Of a DNA stretch of 64,000 nt, positions 9,501 through 15,950 are shown piece by piece. Made by a program: the position numbers and the translations under genes. This stretch comes from Auanema rhodensis (lineage: Eukaryota; Animalia; Nematoda): the NCBI GenBank assembly GCA_964057225.1, contig OZ059898.1:6634001-6698000 (forward strand), written 5' to 3'. The number at the start of each line of letters is the position of its first letter. Position 1 is the stretch's first letter. A model generated the notes under the pieces. The model was not told the DNA's origin, did no database searches, and was given only the letters and a program-made list of their open reading frames with translations.

Positions 9501-10540
9501 GGGGACCACCATCATTTATGGGTTGGTAGTGATTATCATCCGTTCTTAAGTAGATCTGTAATCATACTGGCCACAAAGAACGTGAAAACATACCCTGACG
9601 TCAATCACATTCTACCGCTCTCTCTTGTTTTCTCGTTTAGATGATAAACATTAGAACCCCTCATTTTGACATTATAGGCGGAGCATAATTAGGATCATTT
9701 TCTCTATAGGGTCATACAATAGTAAGATTCAACCCTCATTGTTTAAGTTCTTATCATTGTGAGTTTGTTGATACTATTACCTCTCAGCTTCTGTATATAA
9801 AACAGTTTTAATTGGCTTTCAATATTATTGTTCATATCTTGTTCTCCTTATTTATATGCTCTTGTTTTTCAATGTTTACAACATCTGCTTTGCAGAATTT
9901 CAAAATGTCTACTGAGAAGAGTTTCTGGGCTTCAGCAAAAAGTTTCTTCAGTCTTTCTGCTCCTGTCTCCTTTGCTTCCGTGTCTGCTGTGAGTGCCTCA
10001 GGTTTGTGTTCGGTCATATCATTAATACTAATTATTATTGATTACAGATAAACGCTCTGATTCCAAGAGATTATTCACTGAACAAAAACTAGTTGGTTCA
10101 GTCACCTCCAACTCCGTTTTCATCGATTCTTTTGGATCACTAAATATGCCATAACTGGAGTTATTTTGTTTTCTTGTGCCGCCTGCTTTTCGAGTACTTT
10201 TAGCGCATTATAATCTGGCACGTTAATTATATTTGGATCTCATATCTAGCGGTTTTTGCCTTACTAACATGTCAAACAAATCCTACATTTAATGGATATA
10301 TATCTTTGTTCTCAATTGTTTTCCAATAAAACTGTTAGATTGAATGTTTTTTCTATTAAAAACTGCAAAAAATTTTTTTTGAAAGAATGGACATTCATGT
10401 GATACTGTTCAATTACTATTAATTTTTTATCTTCATTTGATGAACTGTTGATACAATAAGTTATGCAATCATTGAGCATATTTTCATTACTTAATGGAAG
10501 CCCGTAATACAGTAAATAACTTGGAAATATACATATTTGG

Positions 10541-11196
10541 TTACTGGTTAGTAATTACATGCTGAATACCAGATTCAGTGAGAACTTCTTTCAGAATCTC
10601 TAACTTCTCCTCAGTGTCCTTCAAATCATTTATAGATTCATCTAGAGATGTAAGCAACTAAAAAAAAAACTTAAAAATTAATCATTTAGCGACGTTTTTA
10701 CCTCTAATGTTCTATTCTGTTCAAGCTCAATCTCGCGAATACTCTCGTCATGAAGATTTTTCCAATAATTAACAGTTTCTGTTTCACTTTCAAGATCCTA
10801 CAATTAGTGAATTAGATATTGCAATTATAAATATAAAATTACATATGCTGTTATTTCACTTGCGGGTTCCATGGCAGAAACTTCAGTTTGTACACTGCAG
10901 CTTGAGGACTAAACTTCATTTTTCTTCAATATACGAATTGTAAAATATTTTTACCTCAACATTGACAGTTTGCGAAAAATTCTCCTTGTTCTCTTCTCTT
11001 ATCATAGGACTAGGGGCAAATGTCTTCTTCAAAATTAGCTTCAAAATATTCAACTTATATATTATATATATGCAACACTATATGATACCTTGCTGGGGCT
11101 ACGACTGGTTAAATCTTGGCTTTTGTTCAACTGAAATTGAGTAATAGCAGGGCTATTACCCGAAACAGTTTTAAGTCCTTGACGAACAGCGGCCAT
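10541..11196 (-). CDS. gmn-1: Geminin (DNA replication licensing inhibitor)
   Basis: 5 exons: MAAVRQGLKTV (RxxL D-box)...NKENF (KEN)...SVQTE...DLESETETVNYWKNLHDESIREIELEQNRTLE|LLTSLDESINDLKDTEEKLEILKEVLTE. Resembles recalled C. elegans GMN-1; TTCCAG acceptor just upstream of ATG. Confidence 0.8.
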
Positions 11197-11379
11197 TTTA
11201 ATAACTGGAATCAAGAAAATTAACAGAACAAATTAACATAAAAATCGAAATATGAAAACGTGAAACACGTTACAATTCATAGTTAAAGATCCCTGAGCTC
11301 ATTTTATTATACTTTCAAAGAACCTTTTTACACTATGCACAAAGAAAAGACAAAAAATATAAATTATAGATTAAACGAA

Positions 11380-11862
11380 TTAAGAATTAGTTTCAGTATC
11401 CTCTTCTTCATTTTCTAATACAGAGGCAGCTACAGTGAATAGTTTTTCGTATTCTTCCAACTTCTCACTTTTAAGTGTTATATTATGTTGTATTTTTTGT
11501 TCAATCTAAAAAAAAGTACATAATTCAATATATATGCATATATAACCTGTTCATTATCATATTGCACTTTTCGTAATTCGTCCATCTTAAGTTTTGCAAC
11601 AGCAGCCCAATAAGCTAACTCATGATCATTTTGTACATCTAGATCAAACGGTATACTTATCGAGGTATTTTCACAAGAATCAGCAAATCCCTTTTCCTTA
11701 AATTAAAATAAATAACAATCACTAATACTAAAACCTTACATCTGTTTGAACTTCAACAGTTTGCTTGTCAAATACATTAATATCATCTTGAGAATCCTCG
11801 AATACAGAAAATGTGTTAGAAGTTGTGGAAGATTGTGAGAGCTTTCGTGCGAGATTCAACAT
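11380..11862 (-). CDS. Second geminin-family coiled-coil protein
   Basis: 3 exons: MLNLARKLSQSSTTSNTFSVFEDSQDDINVFDKQTVEVQTD|EKGF...HELAYWAAVAKLKMDELRKVQYDNEQ|IEQKIQHNITLKSEKLEEYEKLF...; YW-x2-VA-x6-L-x6-NE-x-I spacing matches the geminin coiled coil. Start codon less certain. Confidence 0.72.
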
Positions 11863-11903
11863 ATCAGATCAACATATAAAAATGGTAAAAATCCAATGGG
11901 ACG

Positions 11904-11961
11904 TTCGCGTTTGGCGTGTAGGGTTCCCTAGCGTCTCTTTTGAATTTTTATCGTTCGCGCC
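11904..11961. promoter_or_regulatory. E2F/DREAM-like elements upstream of the geminin pair
   Basis: TTCGCG (11904-9), TTTGGCG (11910-16), TTTGAA (CHR-like, ~11939-44) and TTCGCGCC (11954-61) clustered 40-100 nt upstream of the ATG at 11862. Confidence 0.5.
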
Positions 11962-12624
11962 GTTATTCCGATTGTGGTTGACGCTAAACTACGGCCATAT
12001 GTTTTTTTGTGGATTTTCCTTATTTACGGAGCGTTATTGTTATGTCATGCTATATTTGATGCATATCTTCTGATTTTCAATCGTTTTTCAAGTCGTTTTT
12101 GGCTTTAATCCTCGGAAAAGGCTTAAGAAACTTGATTCTCTTTTTCTTAATACTTAGAAATTATCTGTTGTTGCCTGTCTTAGCCTTATAGCTAAACTTC
12201 TGAATACATTTTCTTCTATAAATACTATTCAATTGAAAGCTATTGATCATATATATGTATATATTACATATATATGTTTAATGATTTGCGTTATATATAT
12301 GAAAAGTTTGCAAATCCACAGTTTCACTCAAATTTCTCACAGGTAAGTACTAGGGCAGTACACAGTGTTGTGTAATATTTTATGATGTCCTGTAGTTTGT
12401 TTATACGCAAGAGTTTTTTTATGTAATTTTGTTTTGAAGGAGATCGTCCTTATGTTGTTTATTGATTTATATGGTCGTTCACTTCTTATATGTATTTATG
12501 TTCGTGGAATGGCGTTAAATTTGCATAAGTTAATCGCTAATCGACCATTTTCAATCATTCTTTTATAAAACAGTGCATCACATTATAATGATTAGAGTAA
12601 AATTTTGGGAATGATATGTTCTGC

Positions 12625-13032
12625 TCAAATCACATTGCACTGGAACGAGCTCTTCGGGCGATATGGGTTCATCTTGTCGTTGGGAAATCCTGTAATCAGA
12701 GCATCTTCTCTGCTAAGCTCCTGTGTGTATCTGAAATAAATATATATAATAATAATCTACATTGTTGCTATAACTGCACATTTTGATTTTAATACTAGCT
12801 CAATGACTCTAATTGGGATATCGTTTGTTTGAGGTGGGTGTGGTTTATGTGTTGCAAAATGAAAACATTGCAAGATTTTGAAAAATGCATTAGCAATTTC
12901 CTATTAGAAAAACACAAACCTAACGAGATCAGCTGCTGTTTGGGAAATTGGTGTTCGACGCATATTTCTTTCACCACGTAGTTGATCTACTTGTTTTTTA
13001 GCATGTTGAACAGCTTGATCTCTCCCGCTCAT
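12625..13032 (-). CDS. Heterotrimeric G-protein gamma subunit (GGL domain, CaaX), 72 aa
   Basis: Exons 13032-12920 and 12730-12625: MSGRDQAVQHAKKQVDQLRGERNMRRTPISQTAADLVRYTQELSREDALITGFPNDKMNPYRPKSSFQCNVI*. Has V-x-QLR-x-E, D-x-L, NP[YF] and C-terminal CNVI. Confidence 0.93.
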
Positions 13033-15950
13033 TCTAAAGTTATCATTTGAACTTGAATCTTAAAAAAACTTGTTAAAGTATAGCGAACAGTTTAGCTAAT
13101 AAGAAAATAACGTTTACGTCTTCTGCTTTTTTCACGTGGAATAAATTTAAAATTTTATCTGCTTATATGGTGAGGTCAGAATTTATTTTCCAATATAATA
13201 ATCAGACCTGATCCATGGATTTACAGCATTGATCATTTAAATTTCATAGTTTTGACTTGTTCGATGGCTTTCCAAGAACGCAAGAGAGTGTAATACAAAA
13301 TTTATGCTGACCAAGTTATGTAAAAATCGATATTCCTGAGGTCTATGCTGCTAGTAATATGCAGATGTAGATGAGAAAAAGCAGATACGGAGTTAGAAAT
13401 TCTATTTAATTTATTTCTGATTAAGTTTTATAATTTATTATTTTAAAAATGTGCTTTTCTCTAGCTTACGATTTTTATATTTTAACTTTAAAGCTAAATT
13501 ACGAGTTCTAATCTACCAGATTTTTTATTAGTTTCGTGTTCCTAAAATCATTTAACTTCACGGTTCAAATCAGTTTAGGCTTATTGTTCTTGATAGAATT
13601 ACTATTTTTTTTAAATTTTAATAAGGTTCATATCGAGGTCAAATTGCCAATCGTAAGCAAGCCAATAACATAGGCTATTGAACATCTGGTAAACAGCCTA
13701 CTGAGCTCATATATTATATTATAATATGCCTACCGCTGTATTATATTTAGCTGCATTTTTGAATTAGCTATACCAAGAGGCCAGATTTTGGTGATAAATC
13801 TGGATAATATGTGATTTTCACGTAGAGATATATTAAAAATTTGCCGATCGTGCACTAAAAAGCTATACTTTCGAGTTGCCTAAGGTTAGGTTACAAAACC
13901 TTTCTTAGTTTAGGCGATTTGATGCATAGATTTACCAATTACAATCGCATGGATCAGTTTACAAAACATTACTATATTATTAGTGTTGAAAATCAGATAG
14001 TGGAATATTGTTTGATAAGAGTGACAACACAGAGGAGGACTATCAATTTCAGAAAAGAAAAGAGAGAAATCAACACATGATCACCGATGAAAGGCAAAGA
14101 AATGCACTAATGTTATCTCAAATCGAGAGCCAAAGGTAACTCAAGGCAATCGACCCGAGAAGCTGCAAACAAACACAGAAAGAGAACGAGGATGATGAGT
14201 TGGCTGTGATGGTTTGTCTAGTCAATGAGTTTACCAGGTCTGTTTGTTGAGAGAAGACTGAATAAAAGAACGAAGTAAGATGAGAAATCATTGTAGAAGA
14301 ACTGAGGCCATGTAAAATCACTCACAAGCAGAGGAAACGTGAAACTGAAATGTAAAGAGGGGAAGGATTGTTCCGTGAATGTGACGAAGAGAAGAGCGAG
14401 GGAGGATAGTCCAGGGAATCATGTCGACGTCGTATACGAAAATACCCAGATGAGTGTAGGCAATTTGACCGATGACGACGAAAATGACAACTGCCGCCAT
14501 TCGGGCAATAGGAATGTTATATGGAACTACAACATCAGTGAGAAAGGAAGGGACATATTATTTTCGAGGAAGATTTCAACTAATAGAACTAGGGCAGGGG
14601 AATAATATCATACTTCAGGCTTAACATCGCGTGCACTTCTTTTACTAAACAGCTATTTAGAACGTTGTTTCAGTTATGAAATAATTGAAGCATATCCATT
14701 ATAAGGTGTAAATAGGCCGATCTTTATTGACCAATACATGCTCATTCCGAGTTATCTGCTTCTGAACATTTATGGCTGCATGCTAGAGTGTACTTTTGTG
14801 ATACTTACAAACAATCTTTCTTTCGAATCCATAAATTAATTTCGTAAACTGTTCTTGCAGCACAGGATAATAATCGGTGGATTGTGGGCTATGGTTGTGG
14901 TTGTTGGAATTGTTACGACTTGACACCAGATAATCGGCCCGCGTCGCTTTGATCGGTGTGATCATTAATACTTAGTTGGTTTTCAAATTTATAGTTTGTG
15001 ATGCCATATGTATAATAACCATTATCGATGTTTCCAGAAAAGGTGAACATTTTACTAACGTTCTCAAAATATTTATTGGCCAATCCTGGTTGAATATACG
15101 CAATGTCTATATTTTGATGAAAACAACTTACAGCAGATTAAAATACGAGAACCTTAGAATAAGTAAGGAATAAGACAAAGGAGACACGAGTTTCCCCATA
15201 TGCGTTACCAGTAGTTTGTCAGCCAACAGTTCAGTAGGATTGGCGCTGATTCCTTGAAAATTTCTTAAATTTCGGACCGATTATCGACGCCACGTGGAGA
15301 TGACCTGATAGTCTGCTATCACTTATACACTATGAGAAGACAATGATAGCTGACGATGAAGAGCAATCATCCGAAGCATGAACGTAAAAAATATTGCTAA
15401 GATTTGGAGAAGGGTGTCATGTTCTTGTTCTTTGCAGTCCAATCTTTTATAGAATGATCAATAGGTTAGACTGTATAGGACTCTACTGGTGACTAGTAGT
15501 ACAAGTAAATCAAACATTGTATATATACATACCTATATACTAAACAATAGAGAAACTTAAAAACATACTCGTAAAGAAGAATAATGAAGCTTTGAGCTTA
15601 AATATTTTCGTTTATAAATTATATCAATAGGATGTTCTTAGTAGGACACATTTTATAACTTGAATATCCAACAGCCGGAAAATAGTAGAGAAGAAAACTT
15701 ACTACTTCTCTGTCGAAAGTACACGCCCATCGTTTGTATTCGAAATTTCGCGTCAATTAATTCGTCACCAGCCGCAACTTCGGTACGTTCCATGGCAAAT
15801 GGCCCAAGACATCAGTGCGTAGACGCGCCAATCATACATCGCATTTTCATTTCGAGCTTGACTTTCTTAAGAATCGGTTGATTTCCACTTCGCCAGACCG
15901 GTCGGCATACACACACTCACCCACTCATTCTTCCTTCATTTGATTCGCAC

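Follow-up and report, generated by a model that had tools for sequence, protein, structure and literature searches.

Geminin is the main metazoan brake on origin re-licensing. Like its Caenorhabditis elegans counterpart GMN-1, it is a small protein in which a disordered N-terminus, carrying degrons for the APC/C (anaphase-promoting complex, or cyclosome), precedes a central coiled coil, parallel and some six to nine heptads long, beginning with a unique tryptophan. Here we describe two adjacent minus-strand genes, A (upstream) and B (downstream), in a 64-kb stretch of the genome of the nematode Auanema rhodensis (contig OZ059898.1, positions 6,634,001 to 6,698,000), which is called the window throughout and within which all coordinates are given. 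The predicted products of both genes have the same architecture as geminin, with coils of similar extent as judged from the sequence and from AlphaFold 2 (AF2) models. On balance, the pair appears to be an operon of two very divergent geminin-family proteins, largely as a first-pass annotation of the sequence had proposed.

Several described systems offer a comparison. In vertebrates, Geminin associates with the paralogous coiled coils Idas (MCIDAS) and GEMC1, the heterodimers being preferred and Cdt1 inhibition being modulated (PMC3814758, PMC4631479). These paralogues are encoded by unlinked genes, whereas A and B lie in one operon; Idas and GEMC1 also carry long extra regions for multiciliogenesis transcription, whereas A and B are minimal (132 and 156 amino acids). 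Among APC/C ligands, ABBA, KEN and destruction-box (D-box) motifs bind three separate sites on the WD40 domain of the coactivator (PMC5717348). The multi-degron substrates and pseudosubstrates cyclin A, Acm1 and BubR1 carry all three on one chain; here, as motifs, ABBA is found on A, and the D-box and KEN on B. As read from its sequence, the locus is thus set apart by a two-gene operon in place of the single geminin or GMN-1 gene, by a geminin-like coil (A) and a geminin-like D-box (B) on separate polypeptides, and by an ABBA-type motif in a geminin-like protein (A). We know of no ABBA-type motif described for geminin itself.

Gene models and resemblance to geminin

The two coding sequences, their coiled coils and their candidate APC/C motifs are as follows.

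11380-11862, minus strand: coding sequence of gene A, exons 11862-11740, 11696-11547 and 11505-11380 (stop included), 132 amino acids
10541-11196, minus strand: coding sequence of gene B, exons 11196-11089, 11038-10955, 10908-10843, 10797-10702 and 10657-10541 (stop included), 156 amino acids
11383-11609, minus strand: coiled coil of A (YW, residues 70-71, until about residue 122), interrupted by the phase-0 intron 11546-11506
10544-10767, minus strand: coiled coil of B (YW, residues 97-98, until close to the C-terminus), interrupted by the phase-0 intron 10701-10658
11794-11811, minus strand: FSVFED, residues 18-23 of A, candidate ABBA-type motif (Cdc20/Cdh1-binding), a consensus match identical in Auanema sp. 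JU1783
11155-11184, minus strand: RQGLKTVSGN, residues 5-14 of B, candidate D-box read from the sequence, identical in JU1783
10979-10987, minus strand: KEN box, residues 54-56 of B, with Asn at P-1, in a block (IREENKEN) identical in JU1783

Gene A runs from an ATG at 11862 to a TAA at 11382-11380 and gene B from an ATG at 11196 to a TAA at 10543-10541, leaving 183 nucleotides (nt) between the stop of A and the start of B, where about 185 had been claimed for this same-strand tandem pair. Each protein contains a single Trp, directly preceded by Tyr, and the VQT[DE] element noted upstream of the YW-led coil reads VQTD in A and VQTE in B. A phase-0 intron lies exactly 22 codons after the Tyr of YW in A and in B alike, as the first-pass annotation had pointed out, and both introns are present as joints in RNA contigs.

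Searching A exon 2, the longest exon of A, with phmmer against 1.84 billion representative sequences yielded one credible relative, P0001 (137 amino acids, an unnamed protein of Auanema sp. JU1783; E 2e-9), the orthologue of A. Two long repeat proteins, P0002 (1085 amino acids) and P0003 (2589 amino acids), gave several matches to residues 8-34 of the same exon (E 4e-6 and 2e-4), which were taken as chance similarity to a repeat unit; both resemble a bacterial biofilm surface protein repeat that is also the PDB match of A exon 2. On the JU1783 contig (L001), a G-gamma gene is followed by the A orthologue, a 161-residue same-strand gene 170 nt downstream and a small convergent gene; searching B exon 1 inside an uninterrupted reading frame of this contig recovered P0004 (157 amino acids) as the orthologue of B. 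All exon boundaries of A and B lie at the same positions in JU1783, with exon-wise identities of 73, 46 and 71% for A and 83, 79, 82, 81 and 58% for B. Between the two species the proportion of synonymous differences is saturated (0.86 for A and 0.92 for B) and that of non-synonymous differences is low (0.21 and 0.16), so that both are protein-coding genes under purifying selection.

Several elements are identical in the two species across this distance: FSVFED with its surrounding 26-residue N-terminal block of A, the FDL tripeptide of A, the Trp at the start of the coils, and the D-box and IREENKEN block of B. VQT[DE] is also kept in all four proteins, 23-28 residues before YW (CSVQTE in gene B of the window, CEVQTE in JU1783), and gene A of JU1783 has FW in place of YW. 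The complementary APC/C motifs claimed for the pair are therefore real as motifs and conserved, with degron function predicted from them. FSVFED is a match to the published ABBA pattern Fx[ILV][FY]x[DE], a class of motif that C. elegans Cdc20 uses in Bub1; Asn or Asp at P-1, as in B, is favoured by KEN boxes (PMC5717348). FSVFED lies within the best-conserved N-terminal block of A, a region predicted to be disordered (AF2 predicted local distance difference test, pLDDT, below 50), and A contains no RxxL and no KEN in its sequence. RQGLKTVSGN of B has the pattern R..LK.[IV], which we take to be that of the vertebrate geminin D-box. Among shuffles of the orthologues, the ABBA consensus arises at a frequency of 0.0105, KEN in about 10%, RxxLxx[ILVM] in about 17% and RxxL in 56%.

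For searches of structure and family databases, the full-length orthologues P0001 and P0004 stood in for the window proteins. Exon-wise Pfam and PDB searches yielded nothing useful, exons this short being unsuited to them. Against 177,635 distinct PDB sequences, the top phmmer match of P0001 was mouse Geminin (2zxx_A; E 0.5, per-sequence 6.6e-6), aligned without gaps over 43 residues that start at FDL, take in the aromatic-Trp pair and extend into the coil. Using a two-species profile of A, three of the four PDB matches were geminin chains (1uii, 2zxx and 4bry; E 0.45-2.1). What counts in this match is that a family named beforehand ranked first and that its structural register is kept in the alignment. 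In human geminin, Trp99 occupies heptad position d (PMC4631479). Setting the Trp of A to d places A, L, N and I at the first four a positions in both species, identical to geminin including its conserved Asn, and W, K, V/I and I at the d positions versus W, R, A and L in geminin; the Asn at a(+18) is shared by A and geminin, and B has Thr there. A further resembles geminin in its FDL tripeptide nine residues before YW and in an acidic tail after the coil. Judged by sequence, it is A, and not the downstream gene B, that matches the Cdt1-binding and coiled-coil signature of geminin, and the view of the downstream gene as the canonical geminin is not supported, B being also without a PDB geminin match.

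AF2 models agree with this architecture: the A orthologue consists of a disordered N-terminus and one helix (60-122, pLDDT above 90 over most of it), and the B orthologue of a disordered N-terminus and one confident helix (84-152). Each protein therefore has the geminin trait of a long helix starting at a unique Trp, and both should form parallel coiled coils, dimerisation being a prediction. Foldseek comparison of the A-orthologue model with the PDB returned vimentin only (E 3.5), a single helix being unable to discriminate folds.

A second line of evidence came from the ESM Atlas, a language-model feature search over 7.7 million clusters that is separate from the methods above, gives neither alignment nor E-value and serves as a lead. 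Geminin (PF07412) clusters ranked first for P0001 (12 of 20 matches, score 0.92, 191 of 256 shared features) and first for P0004 (score 0.94, 203 of 256 shared features). As a caveat of the tool, 4-10% of proteins still score 0.9 with one family or another after shuffling; the shared-feature counts of P0001 and P0004 lie within the range typical of true family members. That two adjacent genes would both draw Geminin by chance among 7.7 million clusters is very unlikely.

A number of results weigh against assigning the pair to this family. The Pfam Geminin profile (PF07412) matched none of the eight window exons, P0001 or P0004 at E up to 10 (hmmscan), so that at the level of the profile the assignment formally fails for both proteins, an outcome that the first-pass annotation had itself named, for the upstream protein, as refuting its reading; this null carries reduced weight, C. 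elegans gmn-1 having been described as "barely identifiable by sequence alignment" (PMC9641140). None of the PDB E-values of A (0.45-2.1) reaches significance across the database, and an I-BAR protein, which is unrelated, scores equally. For B, single-sequence, profile and coiled-coil-segment searches of the PDB all returned no geminin match. The ESM Atlas may group small acidic coiled-coil cell-cycle proteins, SKAP being also listed. Neither BLASTP nor hhalign detected similarity between A and B, and a Trp-anchored A-B score was only marginally above that of heptad-preserving shuffles and inflated by the anchoring Trp; being weak and biased by its anchor, this permutation comparison is not used as support. 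Finally, phmmer and word-index searches found no relative outside Auanema, which does not imply absence with searches limited to short queries and words; the word-index searches with P0001, B exon 1 and a B alignment returned no relative beyond Auanema and no named protein, and two metagenome scans returned no relative.

Common descent of A and B is argued for by the shared intron position and phase, with a chance probability of about 1-3% given four introns in 156 codons, and by the similarly placed VQT[DE]. If they are duplicates, the duplication would be old or the divergence fast. Taking these lines together, we regard A as a probable member of the geminin family and B as a slightly less probable one, and membership of both is favoured with somewhat more reserve. 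The case for the family is real, though indirect, and its support moderate.

The nulls for B leave room for a reading with a single geminin: A would be the genuine orthologue of the inhibitor of licensing, and B, with its D-box and KEN, a small coiled-coil substrate of the APC/C that is unrelated to A and happens to share its operon. Genes that are linked in function without being homologous are often grouped in nematode operons. In keeping with this, A alone matches PDB geminin, with the FDL-YW-coil signature, B has neither a PDB or Pfam geminin match nor similarity to A, and the best simple heptad register of B places its Trp one position off that of geminin. B nevertheless has Geminin clusters as its ESM Atlas neighbours, with a score above that of A, and its D-box is of the geminin type and N-terminal; a D-box has also been reported for C. 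elegans GMN-1 (PMC12124362). The intron at a common phase and position relative to YW also ties B to A, and when the Trp of B is set to d, its polar d positions at +7, +14 and +28 mirror R, A and K of geminin. We consider it unlikely that A alone belongs to the family.

The roles might also be reversed, B being the GMN-1 orthologue and A an unrelated, fast-evolving coiled coil that resembles geminin through convergence or by chance. A does evolve fast (46% identity in exon 2), its geminin match (E about 0.5) equals the spurious I-BAR match beside a Pfam null, and the geminin pattern was first picked by eye, so that the PDB match is not independent of that observation. Such a resemblance would nevertheless have to account for geminin ranking first of 177,635 PDB sequences in an ungapped alignment, with the FDL spacing, the Trp at d and A-L-N-I at four consecutive a positions kept in both species, for the first rank of Geminin with A in a separate, language-model method, and for the intron position that A has in common with B; we hold it to be quite improbable.

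Probable operon processing and conserved candidate regulatory blocks

The RNA evidence consists of contigs assembled in four runs of one study, which contain about 46% of the words of the window and, when aligned to 9600-13200, prove to be RNA assemblies. All six predicted introns of A and B appear in these contigs as joints with CT..AC ends, the GT..AG of minus-strand introns. Separate contigs for A and B occur in three runs: those of A have 5' ends at 11929, 11926 and 11915 and 3' ends at 11298, 11294 and 11293, and those of B have a 5' end at 11206 and 3' ends at 10500, 10489 and 10463. The elements relevant to processing and transcription are the following.

11205-11292, minus strand: intercistronic region of about 88 nt, with a hairpin, a stretch rich in U and a ttccAG splice acceptor (11210-11205)
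11303-11344, minus strand: conserved block of about 41 nt in the 3' untranslated region (UTR) of A, ending with AATAAA (11308-11303); positions 6534-6573 of L001 in JU1783
11930-11965, minus strand: conserved promoter block, with an E2F-like site, a site like the cell-cycle genes homology region (CHR) and then GACGCT, aligned with JU1783
11954-11961, minus strand: E2F-like site GGCGCGAA (plus strand TTCGCGCC), conserved in JU1783
11939-11944, minus strand: CHR-like TTCAAA (plus strand TTTGAA), 9 nt past the E2F-like site, conserved in JU1783

The A contigs terminate 5-10 nt past the AATAAA hexamer, and the B contigs reach back as far as the acceptor AG and then carry 1-4 non-genomic letters, the expected outcome of a spliced leader ending in AG. 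In the deepest run (X1), one 1044-nt contig continues unbroken from 11505 to 11089 across the 3'UTR of A and the intercistronic gap, with the introns of both genes already spliced out. This contig fits a polycistronic precursor, but does not, as a contig, prove that one molecule spans both genes. A fusion of the two genes, or cis-splicing between them, was ruled out, as no joint between an A exon and a B exon was found and the stop codon of A is kept in the bridging contig. The intercistronic region contains a 6-bp hairpin, AACGTG-TTT-CACGTT, at 11271-11257; its RNA fold is no better than that of shuffles (z = -1.3). A TTCCAG acceptor and a comparable small hairpin also occur between the A and B orthologues of JU1783.

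It is therefore well supported that A and B are processed as an operon, with cleavage at the poly(A) site of A and, about 88 nt further on, trans-splicing of B. The locus resembles rhabditid operons of the spliced leader 2 (SL2) type, in which a poly(A) signal lies about 100 nt before the trans-splice acceptor and the intercistronic region contains a hairpin and is U-rich, and likewise has separate mature mRNAs and a contig that bridges the two genes. The comparison is drawn from assembled contigs, which show just 1-4 non-genomic letters at the 5' end of B, and SL2 use by B is predicted from the layout. The operon-like layout foreseen by the first-pass annotation is nonetheless borne out, and its upstream gene is expressed, as an mRNA separate from that of B.

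An E2F-driven promoter had also been proposed, and a conserved block containing E2F-like and CHR-like sites indeed precedes the 5' ends of the A contigs by 1-35 nt, binding of E2F being a prediction. The block aligns with GGCGGGAA...TTCAAA...GACGCT of JU1783 in a promoter that has otherwise diverged, giving the two-species consensus GGCG[C/G]GAA, 9 nt, TTCAAA, GACGCT, and TTSGCGC occurs only five times in the 64 kb. In C. elegans, adjacent E2F/DP and LIN-54 sites (a hybrid motif) mark DRM/DREAM targets (PMC3093354). The block fits a cell-cycle and germline promoter serving both genes through predicted E2F and LIN-54 sites, and a promoter of the cell-cycle type is a further likeness of the pair to geminin. 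Separately, a second pair of E2F-like half-matches (TTCGCGT and TTTGGCGT; 11901-11917, plus strand) and a CCAAT (11893-11897) occur in the 5' leader of A; they fall in a gap of the JU1783 alignment and are not conserved.

Despite the saturation of synonymous sites, the 3'UTR block of A keeps about 93% identity with JU1783. The block holds UGUGCAUA (UGUGUAUA in JU1783), which resembles a PUF-protein site, and possible roles for it are translational control in the germline or a share in the 3'-end signals of the operon.

We think it highly improbable that neither protein is a geminin and that two lineage-specific small coiled-coil proteins have acquired chance short linear motifs: this would suit the want of significant sequence-profile matches for A or B and of relatives beyond Auanema, together with motifs that are individually common (RxxL in 56% and KEN in 10% of shuffles), and is countered by Geminin ranking top of 7.7 million clusters for both neighbours, a very unlikely coincidence, by motifs conserved in disordered regions across a saturated divergence and by the conserved E2F/CHR promoter block of the cell-cycle type.

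A heterodimer model for A and B

Returning to the reading of A and B as two geminin-family proteins, the following mechanism is suggested. A single promoter with an E2F-like and CHR-like (DREAM-type) module would drive both genes, and the precursor would be cleaved at the poly(A) site of A and B trans-spliced about 88 nt downstream. Each protein would consist of a disordered N-terminus with APC/C motifs and one long coiled-coil helix running from its sole Trp. A would retain the Cdt1-contact part of geminin (FDL, nine residues, YW, the A-L-N-I coil and the acidic tail) with an ABBA-type motif replacing the D-box, and B would contribute a geminin-type N-terminal D-box plus KEN. The likely function would be inhibition of CDT-1, and hence of replication licensing, with destruction timed by the APC/C.

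Whether A and B are better matched to each other than to themselves can be gauged from a crude core count with Trp set to d, which gave the same result in both species. The AA homodimer would contain three Lys-Lys core pairs and the BB homodimer a Glu-Glu core pair with four repulsive g-e' pairs; AB would contain no like-charge core pair, two attractive g-e' pairs and none that is repulsive. The count mildly favours the A:B heterodimer over AA and BB, as with Geminin-Idas and Geminin-GEMC1. An A:B heterodimeric coiled coil is consequently the most economical working model and would bring ABBA, D-box and KEN together on one particle, A giving the Cdt1-contacting FDL-YW, the acidic tail and ABBA, and B giving the D-box and KEN. 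Cdt1 binding, APC/C control and heterodimerisation are all inferred for A and B from their sequences, and the antagonist system that the first-pass annotation gave as an alternative is likewise a conjecture. A stronger proposal is that rhabditid geminin is an obligate heterodimer whose two operon-encoded subunits share out the ancestral functions, with a tripartite APC/C degron assembled in trans, so that destruction, or inhibition of the APC/C, would need both subunits; we regard this as a doubtful, tentative extension of the model.

Neighbouring genes and implications for nematode geminin

The genes flanking the pair are likewise expressed. A G-gamma gene (12557-13035, minus strand) lies upstream of A, with its intron 12731-12919 spliced in RNA. 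Its JU1783 counterpart (PF00631; L001 1452-1843) is separated from gene A by two extra opposite-strand genes (181 and 170 amino acids), which are absent, or at least not expressed, in the G-gamma-to-A gap of about 630 nt in the window. Convergent with gene B is a small gene trans-spliced to spliced leader 1 (SL1; 9894-10313, plus strand), with the loose end TAATTACCCAAGTTTG at 9894, an intron at 10002-10047 and about 68 codons from an ATG at 9905; a counterpart of 75 amino acids occupies the same place in JU1783. A contig of run X1 ends at window position 10141 in the loose end CATTTTGAAATTCTCAAACTTGGGTAAT, which in reverse complement reads as SL1 followed by the 12 leading nt of the 9894 mRNA. 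As this end is joined to the 3' part of the same gene, the contig is an inverted chimera, probably an artefact of complementary DNA synthesis or assembly.

A literature search found no publication on a second nematode geminin, and the pair may be confined to Auanema or may occur widely and have escaped notice. Nematode geminin has diverged so far that recognising it was difficult, and the effect of knocking it down is surprisingly mild. In C. elegans, embryos subjected to RNA interference (RNAi) against gmn-1 are mostly viable (PMC3265957). A second, co-transcribed geminin-like protein would be a candidate for redundancy or for an obligatory partner, and if a cryptic second subunit also existed in C. 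elegans, it could explain this viability. The pair would be an invertebrate counterpart of the vertebrate Geminin-Idas and Geminin-GEMC1 heterodimers, and a natural case of three classes of APC/C degron spread over two chains. For Auanema itself, the genes of JU1783 now listed as "unnamed protein product" can take a provisional family.

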